Part shown: in pieces, positions 13,184-62,442 of the stretch
How the letters are laid out: the number at the start of each line of letters is the position of its first letter
Numbering within the stretch: the stretch's first letter is position 1
Sequence record: OV032902.1
Reading direction: 5' to 3' (one strand)
Length of the DNA: 64,000 bases
Notes under the pieces: generated by a model
Seen by the model: the letters and a program-made list of their open reading frames with translations, nothing else
Database searches by the model: none
What the model was told of the DNA's origin: nothing
Position numbers and translations under genes: made by a program

Positions 13184-15700
13184 ATGAACAATCGAGACTT
13201 TCTCGTTCGCTTGAAAAAGACCGACCGCGATGGTGGCGATTACCTTAGTTGGGTAGTTTGGCCATCAAGCAATACACAGAACCTTCCTTCTGTGGTTGAG
13301 TCTTATGACGGCAACAAGTCTTACCCTGCTGGTATCTTCATTAACTATGAAGGTGCACTTTACAAATCTAATTCCAATGTTCCTGTAGGTTCTTGGGATG
13401 CCGCTAAATGGGATTCAGCTGAAGGCTACGAAGCGTACATTACGCCGCACAGTACTAATCTGGATTATCCTGCTGACTCAGTTATCTATGACGCCAACGG
13501 TGATCTATGGTATCTAGAAGACGCTGCTGCGAAAGGTTTGTTTGAAGACCAAGCATGGGTTAAGTTAACACCTGAAGAAAAGATCGAGACAGCGGTAGCT
13601 TATCTTGACCCTAATTCTCAGGTAGAAGCACCACGTGTTATTCGTGGTTCATTCGTAGATGTTGAAAAGACAGCAGTAGACCTACTAGGTATTGCGCTTG
13701 CTTACTACGATGCTTCTGACAAGTACACTCTTTTCCAGGACGTGTCTGGTAGTGTTCCAGTAACAACTCCTGGCCAATACGTTCGTTACATCTCTGACCA
13801 AATCGGTGAGAACGACGTCGTTATCAATGCGGCTATTCCACCTGTATATCGTGAAGATGCTAACGGTCGTGGTTTCCTAGAGAATGCGGACGGTACTAAC
13901 TTTAGCATTCAATCAGCTGGTGAAACTACTGCGGCACAAGTGTATCAGGCTATTCCAAATGTGGGCGTACTACGTTCTGCTGCTGGTAACCTAGATGCAG
14001 GCTTTGATGCTAAACCTTCTGAACAGGCTAATGTTCCTTTCACTCAAGCAGTTATCGTTGATGCAGCAGCTTCAGCAGAAGACCAAGACAAAGTGATCAT
14101 GGAACTACGTCGTTTCTCTAACCGTTACGACAACGGTGTTCTTACTAGTCTTAGCTACTTCTTCCGTGAGCAAACTGCTGGTTACACTTTCGTTGGTGAA
14201 GTAAACCTACGTAACGTGTTTACTCTGCGCGGCATGTTCTTTGCTTCTGAAGTAATTGAAGATCTAACAACTTGGGATGTTTCTAAAGTTGAAGACTTCT
14301 CTGAAATGTTCTGTGAGTCTACAGGTACGATCGACCTGTCTGGCTGGAATACTGCTTCTGCTAAGTACATGGACTCAATGTTCGAAAACAACACAGTGTT
14401 TGATTCTCCTATCTCTACACTGAATGTTTCTAGCGTTATTTCTGCTCGTCGTATGTTTGCTGGCGCTACTGTCTTTAACCAAGACATCACAGCACAAGAG
14501 TGGACTGCTCTTAACTATGCAGATGAAATGCTAGCAAACACAACTGTTTACGATACAACAGTTACGGGCTTTACTGCTCCTGCTCTTGTTGCAGCTAATG
14601 GTTTCTTGCGTAATGCTATTGCATACAACCAAGTAACGACGCTAAGTCTTCCGTCATTGACTACAGCACAGAACTTCTTTGAAGGCGCTACGCTAATGTC
14701 AAGTGACATCACTATCAATGCGATTGACTTGGTAAACATTAGTGCGTTCTTGCGTGACGTTACAGACTTCTCTGCTCGTGTACAGTTTAGCTCTACTGCT
14801 ATTACTGTTGCCGATGAAGCATTTAAAGGCTGTTCTCGCTTCAACGCTGCATTGAACATCAACATGGAAAACATCGTATCAGCTATCTCTATGATGGAAG
14901 GTTGTGCATCGTTCAACCAACCATTGGAAATTAGTCCTGCTAATATCCTAACAGCTAGCCGCATGTTCCATGGCTGTACTAGTCTAGTAACACAGCCGTT
15001 CACTTCACTGTTCTTTGAAGCTGCTACAGACATCGACTTCTTGTTCTATGACTGTGGTGCTTTGACAGCTGACCTAAGTGACATCCAAGCTCCATTTGCA
15101 GAGTCTCTTGAATCCATGTTCGAGAACTGTATTGGTGTTACTGGCCAAGTAACGGTTAACGCACGTAATGCTACAACTGCCCTTAACATGTTTAAAGGCT
15201 GTTCTGCATTCAACGGTCGAGTTGACATGACTCTGTACCGTGCAACAACTATCGAGTCTATCTTCGAAGAGTGTCTAATGCTTAACGACGATGTGACTAT
15301 CAACGCTCCTCGCTTGACGAGTGTTAAAGCTGCTTTCCGTGGCTGTGATGTAATGACTGGTAACATTATGATTACCACTGCTCTAGTTACAGACTGGTCT
15401 AGCTTCCTTGAGAATGCTCTCGTATGGAATGCTCCTCTGTTACTGGACATGACGTCTATCACTACAGCTGGTGCGATGTTTAAAGGTGCTGTAGCATTTA
15501 ATGCTGACATCTCTAACATCCCTCTGAATGACATCACTGACTTGACTGAGTTCTTGTCTGGCGCAACGGCGTTCGATCAGGACCTTTCTACTCTTTGTGT
15601 AGAGAAGCATCCTGTAATGCCTGCTGACTTCGTTTCTGAAGACATGCCATTCTTTACAGATACAGCTAAGCACCCTCAATGGGGCATTGCTTGTGCATAA
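13184..15700 (+). CDS. BspA / DUF285-type repeat protein, probable virion-associated adhesin
   Basis: Tandem ~25-aa repeats (WDVSKVEDFSEMF, WNTASAKYMDSMF, MFAGATVFNQDI, FKGC..FN); two aromatic N-terminal modules; TLFQDVSG..PVT..GQ.V module; C-terminal FDQDLS.LCV...P.WG. Confidence 0.8.
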   Translation: MNNRDFLVRLKKTDRDGGDYLSWVVWPSSNTQNLPSVVESYDGNKSYPAGIFINYEGALYKSNSNVPVGSWDAAKWDSAEGYEAYITPHSTNLDYPADSVIYDANGDLWYLEDAAAKGLFEDQAWVKLTPEEKIETAVAYLDPNSQVEAPRVIRGSFVDVEKTAVDLLGIALAYYDASDKYTLFQDVSGSVPVTTPGQYVRYISDQIGENDVVINAAIPPVYREDANGRGFLENADGTNFSIQSAGETTAAQVYQAIPNVGVLRSAAGNLDAGFDAKPSEQANVPFTQAVIVDAAASAEDQDKVIMELRRFSNRYDNGVLTSLSYFFREQTAGYTFVGEVNLRNVFTLRGMFFASEVIEDLTTWDVSKVEDFSEMFCESTGTIDLSGWNTASAKYMDSMFENNTVFDSPISTLNVSSVISARRMFAGATVFNQDITAQEWTALNYADEMLANTTVYDTTVTGFTAPALVAANGFLRNAIAYNQVTTLSLPSLTTAQNFFEGATLMSSDITINAIDLVNISAFLRDVTDFSARVQFSSTAITVADEAFKGCSRFNAALNINMENIVSAISMMEGCASFNQPLEISPANILTASRMFHGCTSLVTQPFTSLFFEAATDIDFLFYDCGALTADLSDIQAPFAESLESMFENCIGVTGQVTVNARNATTALNMFKGCSAFNGRVDMTLYRATTIESIFEECLMLNDDVTINAPRLTSVKAAFRGCDVMTGNIMITTALVTDWSSFLENALVWNAPLLLDMTSITTAGAMFKGAVAFNADISNIPLNDITDLTEFLSGATAFDQDLSTLCVEKHPVMPADFVSEDMPFFTDTAKHPQWGIACA

Positions 15701-15712
15701 GTAAAATATCAT

Positions 15713-15750
15713 CCTGTTCTCCTTCGGGAGAACAGGTTTGATTATTTCTT
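15713..15750 (+). terminator. Terminator
   Basis: CCTGTTCTCC-TTCG-GGAGAACAGG then TTTGATTATTTCTT. Confidence 0.8.
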
Positions 15751-15756
15751 TACTTC

Positions 15757-15764
15757 TATATTAC
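15757..15764 (+). promoter_or_regulatory. phiKZ-type early promoter motif TATATTAC
   Basis: Intergenic exact match to the phiKZ early consensus, upstream of the 15818 gene. Confidence 0.7.
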
Positions 15765-15817
15765 TGAGATGGATACATTCGGTATTCACTAATTTCATTA
15801 ATAATGAGGAAAACATT

Positions 15818-16612
15818 ATGAAAACAGATATCACTCTTCTTAAGCTAGCTGGTCTTGGTCTTGACTTTTACTTGGTTCAAAGCGTTCTTAAAGAAGGCAT
15901 GCTAGGTAACGTCGAAACTGCTAAAGGTCCACTTGCAGACAAAATCCGTAAGCGTCTTCGTTTCGGTGAAGGTCTTCAGTACCGCATCATCGATCGTGTT
16001 AACTCAACACACCACGCGCTTAACAATACTGTCGCTGGCCTTGGCTACAAACCTTACCGCCCATCTGGCGAGAAAGTTTACTGTCTGTTCCTTGACACTG
16101 CTTTCCGCGAAGTAGACCGTAACGGTGCACTGTTGTTCCAGAAGCCTTCTGATACATCAATGCCTGTTGAAGTTACTTGCTTCGATGAGAAAGGTAAGCG
16201 TCGTGTAACAATCGACCCGAATGGTAAAGAGTGTCTTCGCTGGCAACGTAGCAAGAAAGGCATTACTCGTAGCAATCGCGTTGATAACAAAACATTCCGT
16301 GCTAACCTTCGTGAAAACGAGTTCCTTGGTGAACACTCTGAAACTAAGGTATTTACTTCTGAGCGCATTGGCGGTAACGAGACTTCTCGTCACGTGGTTG
16401 AAAACGATCACATGATCATGATCTCTCACACCGACCAAACTGCACGTCTTACTCAGCACCTGTTGACTAAAGACGGATTCGGTCAAGTTACTTCTATCCT
16501 TAACGTTAACAAAGGCGTAGAAGACATTTACCAATACGGTACGTTTGAAGACACAGTCATCATCGTTCGTAACGGTAAGAAAATCCTAGAGATGGAAGTG
16601 GAGAAAGCGTAA
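15818..16612 (+). CDS. Hypothetical early protein
   Basis: GAGGA RBS, 264 aa, strongly biased (highly expressed-like) codons. Confidence 0.8.
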   Translation: MKTDITLLKLAGLGLDFYLVQSVLKEGMLGNVETAKGPLADKIRKRLRFGEGLQYRIIDRVNSTHHALNNTVAGLGYKPYRPSGEKVYCLFLDTAFREVDRNGALLFQKPSDTSMPVEVTCFDEKGKRRVTIDPNGKECLRWQRSKKGITRSNRVDNKTFRANLRENEFLGEHSETKVFTSERIGGNETSRHVVENDHMIMISHTDQTARLTQHLLTKDGFGQVTSILNVNKGVEDIYQYGTFEDTVIIVRNGKKILEMEVEKA

Positions 16613-17301
16613 TGGAAGTTATGTACAATCCTACGGCGATCATTAGTTTGATCGTCCTTTGTGTTTTCTTTCTTTGTATGTGGTGGATTGTCTGGTGCTG
16701 CTATTCAGATACCAAGAAAGAGCTAAGTTCTACTCGTAGCCGCAACCGTGAACTGGAACGAAAACTTGAGCGCGTAAACACCTTTATTGATTTGCTAGAT
16801 ACTAAGCACTGTAAAGGTCCTTTACGTCAATTGTTTCAAACAGGTGATCGTGCTGACCACATCATTGATGCTTCCAAAAGCCTGACTGATGTAACAAGCT
16901 ATATTCCGGTTTGCTACATTATCTGCGGTCAAGTGAAACCACAGCATCTTAAGATGTTCACTACTCGTTGTTGGGTTTATGATAACCTTGGTCATCACAC
17001 CATCGGTCAAAACCTTACGAACCATGTTTACACCAACAAAGCCATTCCTGGCTGGACTATGGCTGCGGCTCTAGTGCATCCGGATGACATAAAAGAAGTG
17101 GAGCAGTATCTAGTTTCTAATCATAGTCGCTATGCCGTGTACTATGGGACAGGACAGGGTCGCTTTAACTCTTTGGTGCGTGGACGTGGAGCTGATGCTT
17201 TGGCAATGGATATCGGTGAAGCTATCAATAACGCAATATCTTATCATCCTCTACGAAACATCGTAGAGACTGCATTTAAACATGAACTGGAGACCAAGTA
17301 A
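16612..17301 (+). CDS. Hypothetical protein, N-terminal TM + coiled coil
   Basis: TM AIISLIVLCVFFLCMWWIVW then heptad stretch; TAATG coupling. Confidence 0.75.
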   Translation: MEVMYNPTAIISLIVLCVFFLCMWWIVWCCYSDTKKELSSTRSRNRELERKLERVNTFIDLLDTKHCKGPLRQLFQTGDRADHIIDASKSLTDVTSYIPVCYIICGQVKPQHLKMFTTRCWVYDNLGHHTIGQNLTNHVYTNKAIPGWTMAAALVHPDDIKEVEQYLVSNHSRYAVYYGTGQGRFNSLVRGRGADALAMDIGEAINNAISYHPLRNIVETAFKHELETK

Positions 17302-17975
17302 TGGAAAACTACTTGATTGGCGTGATCGTCCTTTTGTTGATGATTATGGTTGTGATGTGCTGCTACGCAGTTAATCGCATTGGTACCTGGGGAGCAAAAG
17401 TCAGCGGTATAGAAAGCCGAAAGCTTGAGCTGGAAGAAGAGGTAGCGAAGTTAACTGCGATCAATGAAGAATATAACAGAATCAAAACATGTTCTGTCTA
17501 TATGGAAGATAACCCTGACATCTTCGAAAGTCTAGCCAAGCGATTGACTCCTATGGATTTCATCGAAAGCATGTCCTCTGCCGGATTAATAGAAGGCAAG
17601 CATCCGTATATCCTTGTTGCTCGCAGTGGTATCAATGCCAACTTCTCAAATACCAAGACTCACAAATTGGCAGTCATCAACGGTACTTTCTTTGAGAACG
17701 TCATGCTCGAAGCGAAGATACAAAAAGACGGTTGGTACATTGAGTTTGGTTTTGCACATGCAAACGAGATCGTAGATAAGGCAGATGATATCGGAAACAA
17801 TCATGGTGCTTATCGTCTATTTACACGCGGTCACTCTTTGCGTTCTTCTGGTTCTGGCGCAATGGTTGGAGCTTATCCTATTGTGAGTCAGGCGCTACAT
17901 ATTAGCATTGGTACTCCGGTACTAGTTAGTTTGCGTGATGAACTATTGAGAACTTTAAAGGAGTTTAATCAATGA
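17301..17975 (+). CDS. Hypothetical protein, N-terminal TM + coiled coil
   Basis: TM LIGVIVLLLMIMVVMCCYAV then RKLELEEEVAKL. Confidence 0.75.
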   Translation: MENYLIGVIVLLLMIMVVMCCYAVNRIGTWGAKVSGIESRKLELEEEVAKLTAINEEYNRIKTCSVYMEDNPDIFESLAKRLTPMDFIESMSSAGLIEGKHPYILVARSGINANFSNTKTHKLAVINGTFFENVMLEAKIQKDGWYIEFGFAHANEIVDKADDIGNNHGAYRLFTRGHSLRSSGSGAMVGAYPIVSQALHISIGTPVLVSLRDELLRTLKEFNQ

Positions 17976-18631
17976 CAAACACTACAGTTGTCATCATTGC
18001 TCTGATTGTATTGGTTTGTGCCCTAGCTTGGGCACTTAACCGAACGCTACGTCAGAAGCGTGAGTTGGAAGAGCGAATGCCTAACATCCAGCATTTCGCT
18101 GACCGTTGGTTCAATCTAACTAAAGCTTGTTCTCGTCTAACTGTCCTAAAGGGAGGACGAGAGTGGCTAGAGTATCGCCTGGTTAATTGCCAGTTTGAGG
18201 AAATCACGAAAGCAATTACCTTAGGGGCTGATATCAAGAAGCGTTACTTTATCCTGTTTTATTGGGACAAAGACGCGCGCGATAAAATGCCTGTCGGTTC
18301 TTCATCTGAGGAAGCTTACTTCCGTGGACATGGTCGATGGTACGGTTGGGATTATTGGGATAGAACTCGCTTGGTTCGTTCCGGTATTAACAAGAACACT
18401 TATGTTCGTCAGTTCTATGACTACGATGACGTAGAGTTCAACGACTTTATCGGCAAGCTTCAGCAAGCTGGTATCTCTTTTGTTGCCGCTAGTCCTGATG
18501 GAGTTACGCGCCCCAACGAAAAAGAGTCAATCTGTATTCCTTCCAATATAGCAGATATGCCTCCTGGCTACTGGCACGAAATGGAAGACATCATCGACCG
18601 AGTAACGCCTGGTGCATTAACTCGCTCATAA
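17972..18631 (+). CDS. Hypothetical protein, N-terminal TM + coiled coil
   Basis: TM VVIIALIVLVCALAWAL then RQKRELEER; ATGA overlap. Confidence 0.75.
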   Translation: MTNTTVVIIALIVLVCALAWALNRTLRQKRELEERMPNIQHFADRWFNLTKACSRLTVLKGGREWLEYRLVNCQFEEITKAITLGADIKKRYFILFYWDKDARDKMPVGSSSEEAYFRGHGRWYGWDYWDRTRLVRSGINKNTYVRQFYDYDDVEFNDFIGKLQQAGISFVAASPDGVTRPNEKESICIPSNIADMPPGYWHEMEDIIDRVTPGALTRS

Positions 18632-18699
18632 AAAACACCCACATGCAATCATGTGAACAAAACCACTAAACCACTAAAACAAAGAAAAAGGAGATCCTC

Positions 18700-19002
18700 A
18701 TGGACCCACGTAAAACGGCAGAACTACAAAACGACGCAACTGTTGGTGAGCTAGTTGAAGAAGTAACTCGTGAAGCAACAGCTGAAGAACTGAAAGACCT
18801 TAACGAAGCGCAAGAAGTTGCAGCGACTCAAGACGAGATTGCTGAACTTATGGCAGCTATGGGTCAAGGTGGTCTGCAACAAGGTAAAGGTCGTCTACGC
18901 GGTCCTGGTCTAACTCGACCAGTATTCAAGAAAACGACTGCACGTGCTAAAGGTAAAGCAGCACGTCTAGCGCGCCGTACTACTCGCCTAACTCGCAAGT
19001 AA
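18700..19002 (+). CDS. Small bipolar protein (acidic N-terminus, very basic C-terminus)
   Basis: AAGGAG RBS; 15 D/E in first 50 aa; 15 K/R and no D/E in last 39 aa. Confidence 0.8.
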   Translation: MDPRKTAELQNDATVGELVEEVTREATAEELKDLNEAQEVAATQDEIAELMAAMGQGGLQQGKGRLRGPGLTRPVFKKTTARAKGKAARLARRTTRLTRK

Positions 19003-19021: not shown

Positions 19022-19070
19022 ATGACAGGGCTCGGTTGAGTCCTGTCATACTCTTATTTTATTTTTTCTT
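19022..19070 (+). terminator. Terminator-like hairpin upstream of rnl
   Basis: ATGACAGGGCTC-GGTT-GAGTCCTGTCAT then a T-rich tract. Confidence 0.65.
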
Positions 19071-19085
19071 TTGGAGAACTCTACA

Positions 19086-20297
19086 ATGAGTAAACGTCAA
19101 CGCAATACTTTTCGTCTGAATCCTGAGCAAGAGAAACAAGCAGCTAAGATGGCTGCAACGTTCGCTTGGAATTCATGTAACTTCTTGGCAGGTACTATTG
19201 CGCCTGCATCAGCTGACGCAGCTGCTAATGACATCGAATCCATTGAACTAGCATTTGAACAGTTCGCTAAGCTCGACCCAGAAATGGAGTTGATCGTTCA
19301 GGTTAAACACATGGGCTCTCGTGCTACCCTTTATCTACATCGTGACTTTGAGAAGTCTTACGCAACTACGCGTAATGGTTTCCAGATTAAACCGCGTGAA
19401 GGTAAAGAAGCAGCTACGCGCGAAGAGCTACATGCTAATCCAGATCTATGCGATCGTTACTTGCGTATTCGTGAAGCTATGTATGCACAGTGGAAGAAAG
19501 TCTACGGCGATGACGGCTGGGCTTTCGATACTACTGACGTAGTTATCTTGGATACAGAACTAATGCCATGGTCAATCATTGGTAAAGACCTCATCAAACG
19601 TGAGTTCACAGAATACGCAGAAGTGCATCGTTACGAAGACACCATGATCGAACAGCTTGGTTTCTACAGTCAACATTCTTCCCGTAACGAAGAAGCTGCG
19701 CGTGGTCTACAAGACCGTTTGCTAACAGCACGTCATGGTCTAGAGCAATTCGAACAACAAGTCGATATCTTTGGTGCCGACGATCAAGTCGAGTTCCGTC
19801 CGTTCAACATCCTTAAGTATGTTCGTAACGACGGTACTGAAAAGGTTGTCATGGATAACAACTTGCATAACTACGAAATCGTGGGCGATGCTCCATTTGC
19901 AGTAGTTAAAGCGGGTGACTGGGAAAGCAACGATTCTCTTAAGCTTCTACAGAACTATGTTCAGAAGTTTAATATGGAAGGCGTTGTCATTAAGCCAGCT
20001 ATTTATCCTGAAGGTCCTTGTGGTGTTCCGCCGTACATCAAAGTGCGTAACCCTGATTACTTGCACATCATCTACGGTCACGAATACCGCAACATCATTG
20101 CACTGAAAAAGCTAATCAGTAAGAAAGACATCCACAACAAGCTTAATGCTTCTATTAAGCAGTACCAGATGGGCCATGAATTACTTGGCATTTCTTACGC
20201 GTCTATTTCACCTCAGTCTGATACGTACTTTGAAAAGGTACGCGAAATCATTCGTCGTGTTATCCTAGACGAGCAATCAATCGACCCTGCACTTTAA
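19086..20297 (+). CDS. rnl: RNA ligase of the bacterial Pnkp/Hen1 (Pnkp1-Rnl-Hen1) family
   Basis: NFLAGTIAPA, motif I QVKHMGSRA (K74), TRNGF, LDTELMPWS, FRPFNILK, MEGVVIKP, KVRNPDYL.IIYG, C-terminal IDPAL. Confidence 0.88.
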   Translation: MSKRQRNTFRLNPEQEKQAAKMAATFAWNSCNFLAGTIAPASADAAANDIESIELAFEQFAKLDPEMELIVQVKHMGSRATLYLHRDFEKSYATTRNGFQIKPREGKEAATREELHANPDLCDRYLRIREAMYAQWKKVYGDDGWAFDTTDVVILDTELMPWSIIGKDLIKREFTEYAEVHRYEDTMIEQLGFYSQHSSRNEEAARGLQDRLLTARHGLEQFEQQVDIFGADDQVEFRPFNILKYVRNDGTEKVVMDNNLHNYEIVGDAPFAVVKAGDWESNDSLKLLQNYVQKFNMEGVVIKPAIYPEGPCGVPPYIKVRNPDYLHIIYGHEYRNIIALKKLISKKDIHNKLNASIKQYQMGHELLGISYASISPQSDTYFEKVREIIRRVILDEQSIDPAL

Positions 20298-20314: not shown

Positions 20315-22495
20315 ATGTTAGTAACTATTAAAAGCAATAAGCCAGGCATCTCTTACGCAGTTGGTAAAAATCCAGCAGCAGGTATGCAAGTAGCAGTGTG
20401 TCGCGAAGGCCAAGCGGCGTCTTGGTACCACGATGAAACATACTGCATGTTGTTCCGTGACGGCATCAACAAAAACTCTTTCGCTAAGAAAGAATTCAAC
20501 TATCTTACTCAAGATGGTGTCCTATGTCCTATGGCAGCCAACGTACTTATCTCTACGGCTAACAAGTCGATCATGACAAGTAACTCTGGCGATAAGGCTA
20601 TCTACTCTGTAGAGCTTGCACAGGTGCAAATCAAGCGCCTTAAAACCGTAGAGCATCTAATGGCTCACTTTGGTGATGAGTGGACGTTTGTTCTTGACGA
20701 GCTTTCTGAGTTCCGCTGTTACCGCTTCGAGCTTGCTCCTAAGACAGAACAACCTCTAGGCAAAGTACTGCGCTTCGTTTGTATGCTTACGATGTTCCTT
20801 TCTTCGAAGGAAGAGTTGAACCTGTCTAAGCTAGATGATTCATTCATTAACCGCTACATGGGTTACTTGGACGAGTTTAATGCTCCTTACTTCGTTCGTT
20901 ACGTATTCGTACGTAACTTGTTTGATTACCCAGATCAATTCGAACGTCGTGAGCATCTGATCAACAAAGACCCGGAAATGGTTTTCCACTTTGGCGATAC
21001 TGGTCGTCAACGTATGGAAGCTATCAAGAAAGTCCTTCCTTGTATGGACCGCATTCTTGACTTGGGCTGTGGTGAAGGTAAAGTACTTTCTAATCTTGTT
21101 CGCTACAAGCAACAGATTGAAGAGTATCATGCGGTAGATATCGACGAGAACGTTCTTGCTGAGGCACAAACAGCAGCTCGTAAAACGCGCTCTGAGGTTG
21201 ATTTCCATTTCCATGGTAACTTGGATGAGTTCTTGACCAATCAAGGTGCTATGAACTTTACAGAGATTCTGTGTACGGAAGTAATCGAACACATGCCTCT
21301 GGAAGAAGCAGAAGCCCTAATCATCAAACTGTTAACAGAAGTTAACTGGACTAAAGCGGTATTCACCACACCTAACAAGTCGTTTAACAAAAACTATTTG
21401 CTAGGCGATGACGAGTTCCGTCATGACGACCATGATTGGGAAATGACTGTTGAAGAGTTCAACGAATGGTTTACTTCGGTAATGGATAAAGTTCCTGGCG
21501 CAGTTAGCTTTGAATGGTTCCCTATCGGTGACCGTGTGGGTGAAGAGCCAACGTCACAGGGCTTTGTTGTTCGCAACCAAGATCTACCTAAGCGCGCTAT
21601 CCTGACTATTGGTGCTCCTGGTTCTGGTAAGTCGCTATGGGCTTCTCGCTTCGATGACGATCATAACTGGATTGAAATCAACCGTGACATTGCTCGCTTT
21701 GGTCGTGGTAAACCTAAAGACTGGACACAGTACGAGTTCTGTCCTAAGAACGAAGCTATCGTTACTAAGAAGATCAATGCATCTCTTAAGAAAGCTTATC
21801 GTCTAGGTCGTAACATCATCTGTTCGGACACAAACCTAAATGACTTCTTCCGCACCAAGTTCGTAGACGAGCTAAATGCACAGGGTTACTTAGTTGAGTT
21901 CCGTTACTTTGATGTGGCGCTAAAAGAACTTATTCGTCGCAATGAAAACCGCCAAGGTGGTATTCCGTACGAGTCAGTTCTTAACTACTGGCACCGCATG
22001 CAGATGTTAACTCGTCCTGATCTACATGGCCTAAAGGTTTTAAACAAGCAAAACCAATACGCTTGTTACTGTGTAGACTTGGATGGTACTTTGTTTGATA
22101 TCCAAGATCGCCCTGGATATGAAGAGCATCGCTGTGACGAAGACAAAGTCAACGAGCATGTTGCATCTATTGTTCGTGGTCTATTGCTTGGCGGAAACGA
22201 AGTTGTGTTTACGTCCGGTCGTCGTGAAATGGCACGTGAGAAATCACTGAAGAAGATCGAAGAAGCACTAGGTCCTGATCTAGCAGGCCCTGCTTACGAG
22301 TGGTCTTTGAAGATGCGTGCTAACGATGATTCACGTCAAGATGCACTAGTCAAAATCGACATGGTGCGCGAATTGATTAGTTCTGACAAGTACGTCGTAG
22401 CAGCCATCGATGACCGTAAACAAGTTGTTGAAGAGTGCTGGTCTCTACTTGACATTCCTGTATTTAACATCGGTAAACCAACCGAGCGTTTTTAA
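20315..22495 (+). CDS. hen1: Hen1-Pnkp1 fusion: ligase-activating domain + RNA 3'-terminal 2'-O-methyltransferase + polynucleotide 5'-kinase + HAD 3'-phosphatase
   Basis: N-terminal SY...KNP..GM, PYFVR, FGDT..QR; MTase DLGCGEG (D249), EVIEH (322-326), TTPN, FRHDDH.WE; kinase LTIGAPGSGKS (433-440), NRD, DTNLN; HAD DLDGT (588), TSGR, AIDDRKQVV. Confidence 0.9.
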   Translation: MLVTIKSNKPGISYAVGKNPAAGMQVAVCREGQAASWYHDETYCMLFRDGINKNSFAKKEFNYLTQDGVLCPMAANVLISTANKSIMTSNSGDKAIYSVELAQVQIKRLKTVEHLMAHFGDEWTFVLDELSEFRCYRFELAPKTEQPLGKVLRFVCMLTMFLSSKEELNLSKLDDSFINRYMGYLDEFNAPYFVRYVFVRNLFDYPDQFERREHLINKDPEMVFHFGDTGRQRMEAIKKVLPCMDRILDLGCGEGKVLSNLVRYKQQIEEYHAVDIDENVLAEAQTAARKTRSEVDFHFHGNLDEFLTNQGAMNFTEILCTEVIEHMPLEEAEALIIKLLTEVNWTKAVFTTPNKSFNKNYLLGDDEFRHDDHDWEMTVEEFNEWFTSVMDKVPGAVSFEWFPIGDRVGEEPTSQGFVVRNQDLPKRAILTIGAPGSGKSLWASRFDDDHNWIEINRDIARFGRGKPKDWTQYEFCPKNEAIVTKKINASLKKAYRLGRNIICSDTNLNDFFRTKFVDELNAQGYLVEFRYFDVALKELIRRNENRQGGIPYESVLNYWHRMQMLTRPDLHGLKVLNKQNQYACYCVDLDGTLFDIQDRPGYEEHRCDEDKVNEHVASIVRGLLLGGNEVVFTSGRREMAREKSLKKIEEALGPDLAGPAYEWSLKMRANDDSRQDALVKIDMVRELISSDKYVVAAIDDRKQVVEECWSLLDIPVFNIGKPTERF

Positions 22496-22501
22496 CCACG
22501 T

Positions 22502-22519
22502 GGGGCTTCGGCCCCTTTT
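22502..22519 (+). terminator. Terminator closing the RNA repair operon
   Basis: GGGGC-TTCG-GCCCC-TTTT. Confidence 0.7.
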
Positions 22520-22530
22520 GGAGAACAACA

Positions 22531-23793
22531 ATGAATATCAAACCTATCTTTGATTCATACCATCATGGCGATGAACATGTCGTTACTAACACGGCACTTA
22601 AAAACGCCAACCTGTTCAAAGAGTATCTAAAGCTCAAAGACCACTTCTCTGAATCGCTGAAAGCTTTCACGATTACATTTGAAGACTTCCTTGAAATTGA
22701 TACTCCGGCGCTAAAGATCATGCTTCTTAACCGTCTTATCAATCGTCGTCTTTGGGAAGAAACTTATGACCATGAGTTTTCTTTCACTGAAAAAGAACGT
22801 ACTGAATTGTGGACCATGGAAAAGAAACTATTCGATCAAGTTCGCGATAGTCTAGATTCAAAATCTGTGGGCTCATACATTGGTACGCTTCCTACGATTG
22901 CAGCTATTGATGAGTTTGCAAAAGAATGGAATGCGTTAGATATGTTCCTTTCTCCTACGATCTGTATGGAGCGTTTGCTTTACAGCCTTCCTCGCAAGCT
23001 TACCGAAGGCGATGGTTTCTCTGAGCGCATTGCTCACATTACCAAAGTGATGAAAGTCAACAACGGCAATGTTAACACTCAGTCAGAAATCGAAGAATCG
23101 GCTAAGGTTAAAAAGTACATCCTGGAAGACTCTGAGTTGGACTTTGCTACAATCCAAGTTGCTTCTGTTCGCTCAATGCTTGTACTGGCTAATCGCATCA
23201 AACTTGACGATGGCCAATTCGATCGTGCTCTAGCTATTCTAGAATTCCTTGCTCCTAAGCTTGGAAATAACTGGGCGGCTACCAATGCGATTGGCTTCAA
23301 TAACAATAGCATTGATTCAACTGAACGCATGAAAAAGTACGACGAGTTCCTCAAGGCTCATTCGCCTCTTGAAGTTCTTGACGTTAAGACATGGGAAGTA
23401 GTAGGCAAAGACATTACGGCTAAGCTGATAGCTGATTCAATTAAGGCGGAAGTATCTGATAAAGGTACTATTACTGTCTTTGGTCTTGGTAACATTGCTG
23501 AGTTCTATGAAATCCCTATCGTAGAAACCAACAAGTTTTTTGATGATGCTTCGCTTAGAAAAGCCTGTGAAACTTACATCAAGAAACATGGCTTCTTAAT
23601 GCTGGATGCATCGCATCGTCATATCGGTAAGATGATTGACTGGAACTCCATCGATACTCTGATGTTGGAGCTAGGCGAGAAACACTTGGTTATCACCAGC
23701 CGTCTATGTTTCCGCATTGGCGTTCGAAAAGGTTCTCAGCGCATCGAGCACAAACTGACTCGTAAAGGTCTTACGTTCAGTCTGCGCAAATAA
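22531..23793 (+). CDS. Hypothetical protein
   Basis: GGAG RBS, 420 aa, no recognised motif. Confidence 0.8.
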   Translation: MNIKPIFDSYHHGDEHVVTNTALKNANLFKEYLKLKDHFSESLKAFTITFEDFLEIDTPALKIMLLNRLINRRLWEETYDHEFSFTEKERTELWTMEKKLFDQVRDSLDSKSVGSYIGTLPTIAAIDEFAKEWNALDMFLSPTICMERLLYSLPRKLTEGDGFSERIAHITKVMKVNNGNVNTQSEIEESAKVKKYILEDSELDFATIQVASVRSMLVLANRIKLDDGQFDRALAILEFLAPKLGNNWAATNAIGFNNNSIDSTERMKKYDEFLKAHSPLEVLDVKTWEVVGKDITAKLIADSIKAEVSDKGTITVFGLGNIAEFYEIPIVETNKFFDDASLRKACETYIKKHGFLMLDASHRHIGKMIDWNSIDTLMLELGEKHLVITSRLCFRIGVRKGSQRIEHKLTRKGLTFSLRK

Positions 23794-23797
23794 CATC

Positions 23798-23840
23798 TAG
23801 CCTATCTGCCTTCGGGCAGATAGGTTATTTATTTTGATTC
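23798..23840 (+). terminator. Terminator
   Basis: TAGCCTATCTGCC-TTCG-GGCAGATAGGTTA then TTTATTTT. Confidence 0.8.
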
Positions 23841-23908: not shown

Positions 23909-24274
23909 ATGGGTCACAAAACATTACAAGCTTTATCTGACTTTGGTTTTCGAGTCAAAGTATCTGGAACATCCGATCTTGGCGAAAGCGGCATTCGCTT
24001 TAAAGTAAAGATCACAACAACCAACGATCGTTCGGTTGAATTCCAACAGGGTTCTTGTTTAACTAGTCCTTATGGTCTCATTACTTTACTTAACGGCCAA
24101 AAGGTAGAAAACCTATCTAAGATGGCATATGGCAAACTGGAAGATATGTTCGAACGTGTCGCTAAACAGAATGGCGGTCGACTTGTTGCGGTAACTTACG
24201 ATAAGTTCGGCAATCGCTCTGAAGCTGATCTTACCCATATCCTAAAAATCATCGGAGAAGAAAACAATGCTTAA
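23909..24274 (+). CDS. Hypothetical early protein
   Basis: AAGGAG RBS before ATG 23909. Confidence 0.75.
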   Translation: MGHKTLQALSDFGFRVKVSGTSDLGESGIRFKVKITTTNDRSVEFQQGSCLTSPYGLITLLNGQKVENLSKMAYGKLEDMFERVAKQNGGRLVAVTYDKFGNRSEADLTHILKIIGEENNA

Positions 24275-24656
24275 TCTAATAATTGTTATCGTCTGGGCAG
24301 TAGCCTTTTCAGTTGGCGGCTTTGTCGCTATTGACTCTGCACTAGAACTAACTGGACACTATGCAGTAGTCATGAAGATTCTTCTGGTTATTGCAGTTGT
24401 ACTTGTGGGTAAATTCTATATTGCCTACACTAAAGAACCAAAGAAAGAATATCTGCAATCTATGCTCTGTCTTATGATTGTGGTTTTCCCTTTCTTTCTT
24501 CTAGGCGTGGACTATCGATTCATCGAAGTATTCGAATGGGCCGAATGGAATAAAGATATGGCGGGTGCTGTTATGACCGTCGGCTGTGTGCTTGCTTTCG
24601 TGTTTGCTATCCTTATGGATAACTGGCACGATCGCAAGTATCCACAAAAGAAATGA
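24267..24656 (+). CDS. Four-TM membrane protein
   Basis: 129 aa, four hydrophobic segments. Confidence 0.75.
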   Translation: MLNLIIVIVWAVAFSVGGFVAIDSALELTGHYAVVMKILLVIAVVLVGKFYIAYTKEPKKEYLQSMLCLMIVVFPFFLLGVDYRFIEVFEWAEWNKDMAGAVMTVGCVLAFVFAILMDNWHDRKYPQKK

Positions 24657-24670
24657 ATCTGAAAAGATAT

Positions 24671-24686
24671 TCATCTCTATATTACC
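24671..24686 (+). promoter_or_regulatory. phiKZ-type early promoter (TCATCTCTATATTACC)
   Basis: TATATTAC at 24678-24685. Confidence 0.75.
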
Positions 24687-24791
24687 TATATGGATGAGAT
24701 GCATTAAACATCAATTCCCTCCCTCTTAGGCTTCGGCTTAAGAGGGGTTAATCAACTATCTAAACTAAAATTTTTGTTCAAGGAGAACATC

Positions 24792-25205
24792 ATGACTTTC
24801 GCACGTTCAACTTCAATCCTAACTGTTATCGCAATCCAAGTTCTATTTGTATCTATCTACCTGTTCCTACGTAACCAAGCTTTACCGGTTCTACCAGAAG
24901 GAATGGAGTGGGTAACTTACCGTGACATGGATATCCTGTCAGTCGGCCTAGGCTACATGGGTATGTGGTACTTTAAAGAAACTAAAACCGCTGCTGTATT
25001 CCAAGCGGTGTTCGGTGCACTACCTGGCTACATCGTATCTGTCGCAATGCTATCGTGGATTGGCGTACATTACAATGTTGTCTTCTCGTTCCTTGGTTTA
25101 ATTGTTGCTGCCGGATCTGCATGTTTCACCGGCATGATTACTCCATACTACGAAGCTCTACAAACTAAGCTAGGCTTCTTCGAGCGTCTATACGCTAAAC
25201 TATAG
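24792..25205 (+). CDS. Four-TM membrane protein
   Basis: AAGGAG RBS before ATG 24792; four hydrophobic segments. Confidence 0.75.
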   Translation: MTFARSTSILTVIAIQVLFVSIYLFLRNQALPVLPEGMEWVTYRDMDILSVGLGYMGMWYFKETKTAAVFQAVFGALPGYIVSVAMLSWIGVHYNVVFSFLGLIVAAGSACFTGMITPYYEALQTKLGFFERLYAKL

Positions 25206-25208
25206 TGA

Positions 25209-25250
25209 TAAACTCGGAGTCTCTTGCGAGAGGCTCCCATGATTATCATT
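25209..25250 (+). repeat. Intergenic hairpin element, copy 1
   Basis: TAAACTC-GGAGTCTCT-TGCG-AGAGGCTCC-CATGATTATCATT. Confidence 0.85.
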
Positions 25251-25273
25251 CACAACTAAATAAGGAAAACATT

Positions 25274-25546
25274 ATGTCTTTTACTGTATCTTTCATCATG
25301 CCACGTTTCATGGAATCTGAGTGTCTAGAAGTTATGCGTCCTGCTGAGATGCGTGACGGTGAACGCGCTTTCCGTGGTAAGATTACCTACAAGAAACAAT
25401 ACGTTGATCTATACCGTAACGGTAACAAGTTCAACGGTTGTATTCTTGCAATGAAAGAATTCGATTCTAAAGAAGAAGCTGAAGCATACAAAGCTAAGGT
25501 TTCTAAAGTAGAAGGAATTGACGAAATTCAAATCAACGAAAAGTAA
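25274..25546 (+). CDS. Hypothetical early protein
   Basis: TAAGGA RBS before ATG 25274; C-terminal FDSKEEAEAY. Confidence 0.75.
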   Translation: MSFTVSFIMPRFMESECLEVMRPAEMRDGERAFRGKITYKKQYVDLYRNGNKFNGCILAMKEFDSKEEAEAYKAKVSKVEGIDEIQINEK

Positions 25547-25589
25547 TAAACTCGATGTCGCTTACGAGCGGCATCTATGATTATTATTC
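25547..25589 (+). repeat. Intergenic hairpin element, copy 2
   Basis: TAAACTC-GATGTCGCT-TACG-AGCGGCATC-TATGATTATTATT. Confidence 0.85.
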
Positions 25590-25609
25590 ATACTGAAAAG
25601 GAAAACAAT

Positions 25610-25987
25610 ATGTACACAACTATCGCAATTATCATCATGGCTTCTGTAGCTTTCATCGTAGCAAACTTCTTGAAAGACAAGTGCGCTTACAAATCTCAAA
25701 AGCAAGAAGAGCTAAATGAAGTATTCGACCATTACGAAAAATGCATGTTCAAAGAATCTGAAGGCATCAACGTAATGACTCTTGAAGAAATTAGTGCAGT
25801 AGCGATGAATGCACCTAAAACAGAATTAGGTTACTGCTTCCGTCGCTACTTCCTAGTCCACCTAAAAGAAACAATGGATGCAGAAGACATTACGTTCAAC
25901 TCTATCCAAGCTAAGCAGGCAGCAGAAACAGCATACGGTTCTTGTATGACTGACTACGGCCTACCTGAAATGCAAATTCAACAGTAA
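25610..25987 (+). CDS. Hypothetical protein, N-terminal TM
   Basis: AAGGA RBS before ATG 25610; TM IAIIIMASVAFIVANFL. Confidence 0.75.
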   Translation: MYTTIAIIIMASVAFIVANFLKDKCAYKSQKQEELNEVFDHYEKCMFKESEGINVMTLEEISAVAMNAPKTELGYCFRRYFLVHLKETMDAEDITFNSIQAKQAAETAYGSCMTDYGLPEMQIQQ

Positions 25988-59963: not shown

Positions 59964-62442
59964 ATGCTAACATGATATTCTCGTTAAAGGCTTGCTGAGG
60001 TATACCGATGTTGTCAGGATTCATTACCACCAAATCTGCATTAGTGAAACCGCCATACTCAGAAGCATAGTGGGATACCAAGTAGATTGATTTAAATTCA
60101 CCTGTGTCAACGAGTTCTCGGATGTATCTCATAAAGTTGCCACGATGGAGACTATCCATATTTGCCGATGTTTCGTCCAGTAAAAGAGGGAAAGATTCCA
60201 GTTCTAACTGGCGCATGATAACTAAGGTCATTGCGAAATTAACAATTTCTTTTTGACCCTCTGAGAGGTCCTTGATATCAGGCCCTTCTCTGCCTTCGAT
60301 TTGAGTCATGAACTTAAAGTCCAGAGTTTTGCCGAATTCCGGCGGAACAAGCAGCAGTTCTTTTTCCCAAACCTCGTCTATGATTTCATTGATTGATAAA
60401 GATACATTTGTAATCACAGCGTGCAGTTGTTGACCAACGATTCCTTTCTTAGAGCTTAAACAGTGAAGCAAAATTTCCAGTGTTTGCTTGCGGCTAACCA
60501 GTCCTTTCTCTTCTTCCTGTAGCTCTTCAAGTTTAGTAGTAACGAGACGATAATCATTGATAGTCTTGTTCATTTCCGCCAATCTATCCTGCTTGTGTCT
60601 AACAAGCGAATTAACGTTCTCGTCTACAATATCATCTGAGAGTTTAGTTATCAAACTTTCATATTGCGGGACATACTTGTCGTTAAGTAGATTCATGTAC
60701 TGTTCCATCTCCGTGAATATAGTACGAATCTGACAGTAGTGTTTGAACTCCTCTTCGAGCATCTGCTTTTGCTTATAGAACCCGTCGAGTTCAGTTTCAA
60801 CTTGTTTGAACCGGTCTAGTACTTTTTCTTTACCGGACGTCTTCATCAAGCTCAATACGAACTCTTTGTCTTCAATGGTCTTTTGTAACTCAGCTCTGTG
60901 AATAGCGGTTTTTGCATCACAGTGTTCCGCGTGCACCTTTGCGATTACTTCTTTTGTAAACTCAATGACGTACTTCGGACCTTCGCTTGCGAATACCTTT
61001 CGAGCGAGGGGGTATCGATTGGCTAATTCGCGTACATGATTTAAAGACTTGCGATAGTAGTCTTGCGATTCGAGTGTTTCCTTAACGGCTTTGATACCGT
61101 CTTCGGCTTGAGCCATAGCTTTGTCCGCTTTTGCTTTCATTTCCTTAAGGACAGCGATGCGTTCTTCAGTTAAAGCTCCTGATGCCAGAATCTCCTCATC
61201 ACACTTAGGACACTTAATGTTTCCTTCGCGTGCTGCCTCAGCATGAGATATTTTCATACCCACAGCGTCAGAGAAAGATTTCGCTTTTTGATACTTGGCA
61301 TTCAGTTCTTGATGTAACTCGTCAGTTTGCTTGACTTCATCTTGCGTGAAGAACTTTGGCACTTCTGGAAATACTTCCATGTAATGAAGCAATGCCGAAT
61401 GGCAAGCCAATAGTTCATCGACGTAGTTCTGTAAGTTATCTATTTCCAAAGACACTTCTGGTAGGGCGTTGAGTTGCGAGCGCAGTAAATCAAGTTCTGC
61501 TTCGTATTGCTCTCGGCTAGATTGCACAGGTAAGTTTGCAAACTTGGCCGCCTGCTCTTCCAATTTGGAGTGTTCTTGCAGGTGCTCTCCTATTTTTGTT
61601 TCAACATCAGCTAGACGTGCTTGTGCAACGCTTGCGACATCCACCAATTGGTTTTTGTCTTGCACACGTACGCCGTTTCTGAGACGGTACTCTGGCATTA
61701 GCTCTTTCAGCTTCTTGTGTAGTTTATTGTACTGACGATACAGTCCTTCTATCTTCTTAGACAGATTCAACAACTCAGACTTGGTTCCGGCCTTGTCTAC
61801 AGAGAAGTTGGTTTTAGGAATCAAAGAAGTAAGTTCGTCATGGAGAATTTTAGCTTTCTCTTCTAACTCATCTACACTATCCATAGCAGCAAGCTGTTTC
61901 GCAGTATCGGAATACTTAGACGCTAGGTGTTTTAAAGCGCCAACGATATCACGGTGAACAACACGGATTTTATCGAAGCAATCAATAGCGTAATCCAGCT
62001 CCAGCCCAGAAATCATTACCAGCAAGTCTTTGCGTGCATTAGGAGACATCTCCGTAAATGCTAACTTACCGGTTAAAAGTTTATGATGGAAAGCAGTATA
62101 GCCTAAATGACTTTCTGTTAACTGCTTTTGAACAGCGGATGTTCCGCCAGGGTTTAGGTTCTCGCCATCTACCCAGAACTCATGATGTGGTGCACCACCT
62201 TTATAGTGGCTGACTAGACGATATTGTTTTTCATGGAATGTCGCTTCTAGTTCACGCACGCCGCCTTTCATGAAGTCACTTTTGTCAAGAGGTGCTAACG
62301 ATAATGCTCGAAGCAATGATGATTTGCCTGAACCGTTTGTACCTATAATAATTTGTAGCAATGCTTTAGGAGTATAGGTTACTTGCATGGTTCCACAAAA
62401 CGTTAGTGGAATGTAACCATACAGATAAAGTTTACTAATCAT
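59962..62442 (-). CDS. sbcC: SbcC / Rad50-like SMC ATPase
   Basis: Walker A GTNGSGKSS, long coiled coil with CPKC hook, signature LSEGQ, Walker B LLLDE, VSH; start moved to ATG 62442. Confidence 0.92.
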   Translation of the reverse strand: MISKLYLYGYIPLTFCGTMQVTYTPKALLQIIIGTNGSGKSSLLRALSLAPLDKSDFMKGGVRELEATFHEKQYRLVSHYKGGAPHHEFWVDGENLNPGGTSAVQKQLTESHLGYTAFHHKLLTGKLAFTEMSPNARKDLLVMISGLELDYAIDCFDKIRVVHRDIVGALKHLASKYSDTAKQLAAMDSVDELEEKAKILHDELTSLIPKTNFSVDKAGTKSELLNLSKKIEGLYRQYNKLHKKLKELMPEYRLRNGVRVQDKNQLVDVASVAQARLADVETKIGEHLQEHSKLEEQAAKFANLPVQSSREQYEAELDLLRSQLNALPEVSLEIDNLQNYVDELLACHSALLHYMEVFPEVPKFFTQDEVKQTDELHQELNAKYQKAKSFSDAVGMKISHAEAAREGNIKCPKCDEEILASGALTEERIAVLKEMKAKADKAMAQAEDGIKAVKETLESQDYYRKSLNHVRELANRYPLARKVFASEGPKYVIEFTKEVIAKVHAEHCDAKTAIHRAELQKTIEDKEFVLSLMKTSGKEKVLDRFKQVETELDGFYKQKQMLEEEFKHYCQIRTIFTEMEQYMNLLNDKYVPQYESLITKLSDDIVDENVNSLVRHKQDRLAEMNKTINDYRLVTTKLEELQEEEKGLVSRKQTLEILLHCLSSKKGIVGQQLHAVITNVSLSINEIIDEVWEKELLLVPPEFGKTLDFKFMTQIEGREGPDIKDLSEGQKEIVNFAMTLVIMRQLELESFPLLLDETSANMDSLHRGNFMRYIRELVDTGEFKSIYLVSHYASEYGGFTNADLVVMNPDNIGIPQQAFNENIMLA

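Follow-up and report, generated by a model that had tools for sequence, protein, structure and literature searches.

A fused Hen1–polynucleotide kinase-phosphatase and its partner RNA ligase in Vibrio phage vB_VpaM_sm033: a two-gene, phage-borne form of the Pnkp1-Rnl-Hen1 system for mending RNA

The stretch of DNA analyzed here (64,000 nucleotides (nt), hereafter the window) matches Vibrio phage vB_VpaM_sm033 (OV032902.1) with 100% identity. This linear record has 320,253 bp, of which the window covers positions 62001–126000; record positions are thus obtained by adding 62,000 to the window positions given below. Two adjacent genes on the plus strand are the subject of this study: rnl (19086–20297), encoding a stand-alone Pnkp-type RNA ligase of 403 amino acids (aa), and hen1::pnkp1 (20315–22495), encoding a single 726-aa protein in which Hen1 is fused to a T4-type polynucleotide kinase-phosphatase. 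Together, they constitute a rare, phage-borne, two-gene fused form of the known three-protein RNA repair system Pnkp1-Rnl-Hen1. The annotation of OV032902.1 calls the fusion gene simply 'polynucleotide kinase' and lists each of the two adjoining genes as 'hypothetical protein'. The domain content of the pair, its intact catalytic residues, the geometry of the fusion, the linkage with rnl, the single origin, the rarity and the restriction to phages were all shown by the analysis.

The fusion gene is open over 726 codons from ATG to TAA, with a Shine-Dalgarno sequence (GGAG) 8 nt before the ATG. Pfam assigned residues 3–216 (20321–20962) to Hen1_N with an E-value of 2.3e-34, and this part of the structural model superposed on the Hen1-N chains of 4e6n and 4drf with Z-scores of 18–19. 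The Hen1 2'-O-methyltransferase domain follows at residues ~231–421 (21005–21577). It was recognized by class-I methyltransferase Pfam models covering ~231–407, by the NCBIfam model of bacterial Hen1, TIGR04074, at 231–407 (4e-23), and by structural matches to bacterial Hen1 methyltransferases (Z 19–20). The T4-type polynucleotide 5'-kinase domain spans residues ~426–575 (21590–22039) and was identified by the match to T4 Pnkp (1ltq) and by Pfam AAA_33 at residues 429–548 (2.8e-12). At residues 584–719 (22064–22471), there is a HAD-type 3'-phosphatase domain (Pfam HAD_PNKP, 4.8e-25), which superposed on the T4 phosphatase 5uj0 with a Z-score of 18.9 and a root-mean-square deviation (rmsd) of 1.7. 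In addition, PHROG 505, 'polynucleotide kinase', matched residues 427–721. A previous reading of the DNA alone (the sequence-only reading) had proposed this order of four domains in a single 726-aa chain without stop codon or frameshift; both the open reading frame (ORF) and the Pfam matches bear it out, and the domain limits it gave lie within a few residues of those of Pfam.

To describe the fusion as a whole, an AlphaFold2 model was built on a 52-sequence alignment. The model had a mean predicted local distance difference test value (pLDDT) of 92.9 and a predicted template modeling score of 0.83, with no segment below a pLDDT of 50. According to DSSP, the junction consists of residues 422–425 (21578–21589), a four-residue turn joining the last methyltransferase strand (411–421) to the first kinase strand (426–433), with pLDDT above 90 throughout. 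By sequence, the best solved match of the N-terminal half was Capnocytophaga gingivalis Hen1 (CgiHen1, 4xrp_C; 3.1e-27), while the C-terminal half matched T4 Pnkp (1ltq) at 3.6e-29 and C. gingivalis Pnkp1 at 6.8e-19. Foldseek gave template modeling (TM) scores of 0.80 to full-length CgiHen1 and 0.80–0.83 to T4 Pnkp. With the structural aligner, residues 1–421 of the model superposed on residues 1–435 of the 436 of CgiHen1 (Z 31.8), and residues 425–725 on residues 1–301 of the 301 of T4 Pnkp (Z 25.7). From this end-to-end superposition, the fusion is two complete enzymes placed end to end.

The conservation of catalytic positions was assessed over the 16 fused proteins described below. Altogether, 19 of 23 positions were invariant, two more varied conservatively (D/E and S/T), and a fourth variable position, R546, was M or Q in two of the proteins. 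The methyltransferase positions checked were G251, G253, E322, E325, H326, R369, and H373, and the invariant ones comprised G251 and G253 of the S-adenosylmethionine (SAM) motif and the metal ligands E322, E325, H326, and H373. All four kinase residues K439, D458, R461, and R542, which align with K15, D35, R38, and R122 of T4 Pnkp, were checked and found invariant, as were D588, D590, T592, R599, S634, R636, K680, D699, and D700 of the phosphatase. Fusion residues also align with D165, D167, R176, R213, and D277/D278 of T4 Pnkp. We take the catalytic roles of the aligned T4 residues K15, D35, R38, D165, D167, R176, R213, and D277/D278 to be established.

The product of rnl matched Pfam PNKP_ligase (1.5e-28), and the same ORF contains neither a kinase nor a phosphatase domain. 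The ATG at 19086, preceded by a GGAG at a distance of 9 nt, was taken as its start; a start at the TTG at 19071 is unlikely. The best solved relative was C. gingivalis Rnl (4xrp_B, 1.8e-40), whereas the ligase domains of canonical Pnkp proteins reached only ~1e-10. The ligase motifs KxMG (with K74), DxELMPW, EGVVIKP, and KVR were invariant in nine orthologues. A PNKP_ligase gene of 350–417 aa was found directly upstream of the fusion gene and on the same strand in all ten fused loci inspected (sm033, RYC, L005, L006, L007/8, L009, L010, L011, L015, and L016). The free ligase suggested by the sequence-only reading is therefore a Pnkp-type ligase encoded by a separate gene immediately upstream of the fusion. 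One of these loci, L010, also codes for a 372-aa protein (L010:1985-3103) that consists of Hen1_N alone (Pfam, 9.6e-11) without a methyltransferase; its gene sits two genes upstream of rnl, and the protein is a possible second subunit, for binding the ligase or for regulation.

To examine how the two proteins might fit together, residues 1–590 of the fusion, that is without the phosphatase, were co-folded with Rnl, one copy each, on paired 8-row alignments that did not include the RYC ligase. The resulting interface score (ipSAE) was 0.73, compared with 0.00 for the best of three controls. In calibration, 58 of 80 solved complexes and 2 of 110 mismatched pairs attained this ipSAE value, counts that are a rough guide here since author-made alignments were used. 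The confident part of the predicted interface involves Hen1_N residues 2–135 with Rnl residues 172–212, 328–343, and 400–402. The model thus predicts that Rnl docks on the Hen1_N domain, in agreement with the known binding mode of Hen1-N and ligase.

Homologues were searched for in several ways. A word-indexed search returned six more fused proteins with 33–53% identity, and when 1.84 billion protein representatives were scanned exhaustively with HMMER, 12 fused proteins of 702–745 aa emerged, ranking above more than 130 stand-alone Hen1 and about eight stand-alone Pnkp proteins. A fused copy of 717 aa is encoded by Vibrio phage RYC, and another was found in IMG/VR on a 180-kb contig. The total came to 16 fused proteins, including those of two isolate phage genomes. 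All fused copies are located on isolate phages or on phage-like contigs of 12–320 kb. No fusion was detected when ~186,000 prokaryote species, each represented by one genome, were scanned with two peptide patterns, which does not prove absence. The same scan detected 15 loci with Hen1 only (Saccharibacillus, Listeria, and Enterococcus) and eight with Pnkp only (seven cyanobacterial and one actinobacterial). In the one cyanobacterial locus inspected, in a metagenome-assembled genome (L038:1919-3849), an Rnl1-family ligase and a Pnkp with a HAD phosphatase are encoded by overlapping genes, a T4-type two-gene repair pair inside a cellular genome. The literature searched contained nothing on sm033, on a fusion of Hen1 and Pnkp or on tests of a phage Hen1 as counter-defence, a mention in Burroughs & Aravind 2016 (NAR 44:8525) not being excluded. 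The sequence-only reading had allowed that the fusion might already be common or characterized; with 12 among 1.84 billion representatives and no description in the literature searched, it is neither.

In 13 of the 16 fused proteins, the GDxV motif and the P-loop are 28 residues apart, and this fixed spacing indicates a rigid joint rather than a floppy tether. In a FastTree phylogeny of 144 Hen1 sequences, for which only Shimodaira–Hasegawa (SH)-like supports were calculated, the Hen1 halves of 15 fused proteins (all but L016) formed one clade with a support of 98, a pattern that fits a single fusion event.

The unfused relatives are arranged differently. The nearest unfused Hen1 gene adjoins a canonical 891-aa Pnkp (kinase-Metallophos-ligase) on a 228-kb phage-like contig (L012:5001-8984), and the canonical bacterial system is therefore phage-borne too; at this locus, the two genes adjoin NAMPT and nucleotide-metabolism genes. 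The nearest unfused Pnkp adjoins an Rnl1 ligase. In the jumbo phages XacN1 (L003:4427-7501) and RAS14 (L004:4394-7611), a kinase-only AAA_33 protein, Hen1, and PNKP_ligase are encoded side by side in three ORFs, and the genes next to them hold no phosphatase domain. The ligase domain is the only one in XacN1 ORF197, which is annotated as 'metallophosphoesterase' and named PNKP in the XacN1 paper. That paper mentions the presence of PNKP and Hen1 homologues and nothing further, and a putative Pnkp1-Rnl-Hen1 cluster is mentioned in the Borg paper. Hen1-linked repair thus comes in three or more arrangements in phages, the fused form being among the rarest.

The closest known counterpart of the sm033 pair is the Pnkp1-Rnl-Hen1 system, which Wang, Selvadurai & Huang 2015 (PMC4411300) called a 'hybrid' between the T4 system and Pnkp-Hen1. 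It is found in about ten Capnocytophaga species, in which rnl and pnkp1 share an operon while hen1 has a separate genomic location, and it assembles into a 270-kDa 2:2:2 heterohexamer around a Pnkp1 dimer core of ~6,800 Å2 (PMC4411300). Its other interfaces measure ~3,200 Å2 (Rnl-Hen1), ~600 Å2 (Pnkp1-Rnl), and ~700 Å2 (Pnkp1-Hen1), the last being seen in the crystal but not by gel filtration (PMC4411300). Both systems consist of the same four types of module, namely a T4-type kinase, a HAD (DxDxT) phosphatase, a stand-alone ligase, and a Hen1 with its N-domain. All three proteins of 4XRP were among the top solved relatives of the phage pair, Rnl and Hen1 being the best, and the order rnl then pnkp1 is kept in the phage. 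The phage system, on the other hand, has two chains instead of three: the hen1 gene, far from the rnl-pnkp1 operon in Capnocytophaga, is fused here, so that the C-terminus of Hen1 is joined to the N-terminus of Pnkp1 by ~3–4 residues, and the assembly expected is 2:2 instead of 2:2:2. The Pnkp half is also nearer to T4 Pnkp than to Pnkp1, the residues of Pnkp1 that form salt bridges with Rnl are not kept, and the carrier is a phage and not an oral bacterium. The locus is best described as a fused form of this 'hybrid' and not as an unrelated design.

With the canonical Pnkp-Hen1 system of Clostridium thermocellum and Anabaena variabilis, the phage pair has in common the Hen1 N-domain and Mn-dependent 2'-O-methyltransferase, the Pnkp-type ligase fold, the two-gene layout, and the logic of 'repair with immunity'. 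The canonical phosphatase is a metallophosphoesterase, whereas that of the phage is of the HAD type, and no Metallophos domain is present in the phage pair. Moreover, the canonical system fuses kinase, phosphatase, and ligase and leaves Hen1 free, while the phage fuses Hen1, kinase, and phosphatase and leaves the ligase free. In agreement, TIGR04075 matched the phage locus in the ligase part only, with 93 bits against a cut-off of 750. The C-terminal 300 residues of the fusion correspond to a complete T4-type Pnkp, and like T4 Pnkp and Rnl1, which have an established role in reversing anticodon-nuclease damage, the pair is phage-encoded. Its ligase, however, is of the Pnkp type and not Rnl1, and Hen1 methylation is absent from T4. 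The nearest unfused relatives of its Pnkp half still pair with Rnl1. The sequence-only reading had called the fusion a third arrangement of this repair machinery. It does differ from both the canonical and the three-chain systems, but it is not simply the third one, given the three-gene loci of XacN1 and RAS14 and the canonical system on phage-like contigs. The suggestion that fusion would simplify the operon is weak, as the canonical system also has two genes. The same reading also suggested that fusion could fix the sequence of healing, methylation, and sealing, but ring geometry has been proposed to do so even in the unfused complex (PMC4411300).

In our judgment, it is quite likely that rnl and hen1::pnkp1 encode a phage machine that mends RNA in a 'repair and immunise' mode and corresponds to the Capnocytophaga Pnkp1-Rnl-Hen1 complex reduced to two chains. 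We infer the enzymatic activities, oligomeric state, substrate, and counter-defence role of the fused system as follows. A host ribotoxin, for example an anticodon nuclease, would cut tRNA or another RNA of translation, and the ends produced would carry a 2',3'-cyclic phosphate and a 5'-OH. With D588 as nucleophile, the HAD domain would take off the 3' phosphate, the kinase (K439, D458) would phosphorylate the 5'-OH, and the Hen1 methyltransferase (E322, E325, H326, H373) would add a methyl group to the 2'-OH of the 3'-terminal nucleoside. Sealing would then fall to Rnl (K74), which the Hen1 N-domain would hold and activate, and the 2'-O-methyl group at the junction would block a second cut by transesterifying nucleases. 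For the unfused complex, a route of the 3'-end from phosphatase to methyltransferase to ligase has been proposed, the order of which the ring geometry was suggested to impose (PMC4411300). By making the weakest contact of that complex (Hen1-Pnkp1, ~700 Å2) covalent, the fusion would guarantee 1:1 stoichiometry and assembly. The assembly is probably a 2:2 heterotetramer formed through Pnkp dimerization.

The remaining content of the phage genome is of relevance to the role of the pair. In the whole sm033 record, no match was obtained to the Rfam tRNA model, with which the control was positive in 14 of 14 genomes, or to RtcB and Rnl2. Rnl1 (PF09511) had no match in the record either, and the control genomes were silent too. 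The sole copy of HAD_PNKP in the record is that of the fusion itself. As no tRNA genes, RtcB, Rnl1, or Rnl2 were found, the phage relies on host tRNAs and the pair is its only recognizable RNA-sealing route. Many other jumbo phages do carry tRNA genes, e.g., XacN1 with 56. Judged by the analogy of T4 Pnkp/Rnl1 acting against PrrC, the role of the pair would most likely be to reverse host ribotoxin damage and to protect the repaired RNA from renewed cleavage. A more far-reaching version, towards which we are almost evenly inclined but lean slightly against, is that the pair is a dedicated counter-defence that immunizes host tRNAs permanently by 2'-O-methylation and so ends a futile cycle of cleavage and repair, as an alternative to carrying tRNA genes, with the fusion fixing the pairing of Hen1 and Pnkp1 protomers.

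Several observations weigh against this interpretation or parts of it. The predictor may owe its docking score to having seen 4XRP or 4E6N. In the 1:1 model, from which the phosphatase was left out, no confident contact was predicted between Rnl and the kinase. In Pnkp1, R29, R33, and K110 make the salt bridges between Rnl and the kinase domain that close the ring (PMC4411300), but R29 and R33 align with S444 and a gap in the fusion. Because of the missing kinase contact and the loss of R29/R33, ring closure as in 4XRP is not supported; of the likeness to the Pnkp1-Rnl-Hen1 ring that the sequence-only reading proposed to look for, the docking on Hen1_N was predicted and the kinase contact was not. 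The orientation of kinase and phosphatase in the model follows T4 Pnkp (TM 0.83) and is unlike that of Pnkp1 within the complex (TM 0.40, rmsd 19 Å). The Pnkp halves of the fused proteins are not monophyletic, as two of them, P0018 and P0020, group with stand-alone Pnkps (92/92); the Hen1 halves of these two nonetheless fall inside the single fused clade, so this could be due to exchange of the Pnkp module, or to weak resolution or an artefact of the tree. Finally, the analysis named no host nuclease target.

This last point leaves some room for the enzymes being active but serving the phage's own RNA metabolism, for example in the processing, end-protection, or stabilization of its transcripts or of small RNAs by 3'-terminal 2'-O-methylation. 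Eukaryotic HEN1, which methylates the 3' ends of small RNAs, is also a structural match to the model (3htx, Z 21.5), and the genes around the locus are early-type ones of unknown function, nrdA and nrdB being found a few kb upstream. That Hen1 is strictly linked with a sealing ligase and healing domains in the ten loci, however, speaks for the repair of breaks and not for simple end-capping, and the nearest homologous system, the unfused one of Capnocytophaga, repairs ribotoxin-cleaved RNA in vitro (PMC4411300), which makes this explanation an unlikely one. Even less probable, in our opinion, is that Hen1 is retained chiefly for scaffolding, binding and activating the ligase, with methylation dispensable and the pair performing plain T4-like healing and sealing. 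The Hen1 N-domain does activate the ligase in known systems (PMC4411300), the predicted interface lies on Hen1_N residues 2–135 only, and the L010 locus has its extra Hen1_N-only protein, but the invariance of the SAM-binding and metal-ligand residues in 16 proteins with an overall identity of only ~30–55% argues for selection on catalysis. That assembly, sequencing, or gene calling has artificially joined two adjacent genes has a negligible probability. An artefact is excluded because 15 further proteins, independently assembled and with 28–55% identity, are continuous fusions of the same kind, two of the 16 being from isolate phages, and the junction is of conserved length. The joint was also modeled confidently as strand-turn-strand, and the DNA around it (21540–21640) contains no homopolymer and no slippery run. 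We therefore retain repair and immunization of cleaved RNA by a two-chain complex as the explanation that fits the data best.

As to the surroundings of the two genes, a terminator-like hairpin with a 12-bp stem followed by a T-rich tract (19022–19049, plus strand; found by consensus scan and by reading the sequence, a pattern match only) lies just upstream of rnl and probably ends the preceding transcription unit. Between the stop codon of the fusion and the ribosome-binding site of the next gene, a small GC hairpin, GGGGC-TTCG-GCCCC followed by TTTT (22502–22519, plus strand), was read from the sequence. It falls under the T-run threshold of the terminator scan and may be a weak terminator bounding a two-gene unit. 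The next gene (22531–23793, plus strand) encodes a 420-aa protein of no recognizable family: no match was found in Pfam, NCBIfam, or PHROG, nor a useful one in the fold atlas. It is 28% identical to the product of the syntenic gene in L005, and homologues occur only in the closest sm033-like metagenomic contigs. Its candidacy as a third component was rejected, as it is unrelated to the genes downstream of more distant fused loci. It is followed by a strong terminator-like hairpin with a 13-bp stem and a T-tract (23798–23827, plus strand), likewise a pattern match from the scan only. The neighboring genes at 13184–19002 and 23909–25987 gave only DUF285 and weak transmembrane matches, and nothing relevant. 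The DUF285 matches include an 838-aa protein with seven DUF285 repeats encoded upstream of the repair locus (13184–15700), and DUF285 proteins likewise take this upstream place in L005, L006, and L009, which are related contigs.

The fusion can be read as a 'Rosetta stone' that gives independent support to the weak Hen1-Pnkp1 contact known from the crystal and not from solution. If the interpretation is true, the two-chain complex would offer a simpler target for structural and mechanistic study of how the 3'-end passes from phosphatase to methylase and on to ligase. In practical terms, the interest is modest, but one polypeptide with the predicted activities of kinase, phosphatase, and 3'-end 2'-O-methylase could serve as a reagent for RNA end modification. 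Host defences that cut tRNA or rRNA, such as anticodon nucleases of the PrrC/RloC type and newer systems, are under active study, and the idea of counter-defence is thereby testable. The 'repair with immunity' of Hen1 has so far been characterized in bacteria only; finding large lytic phages with this machinery, compactly fused and with a ligase always at its side, places RNA repair in the arms race between phage and host.

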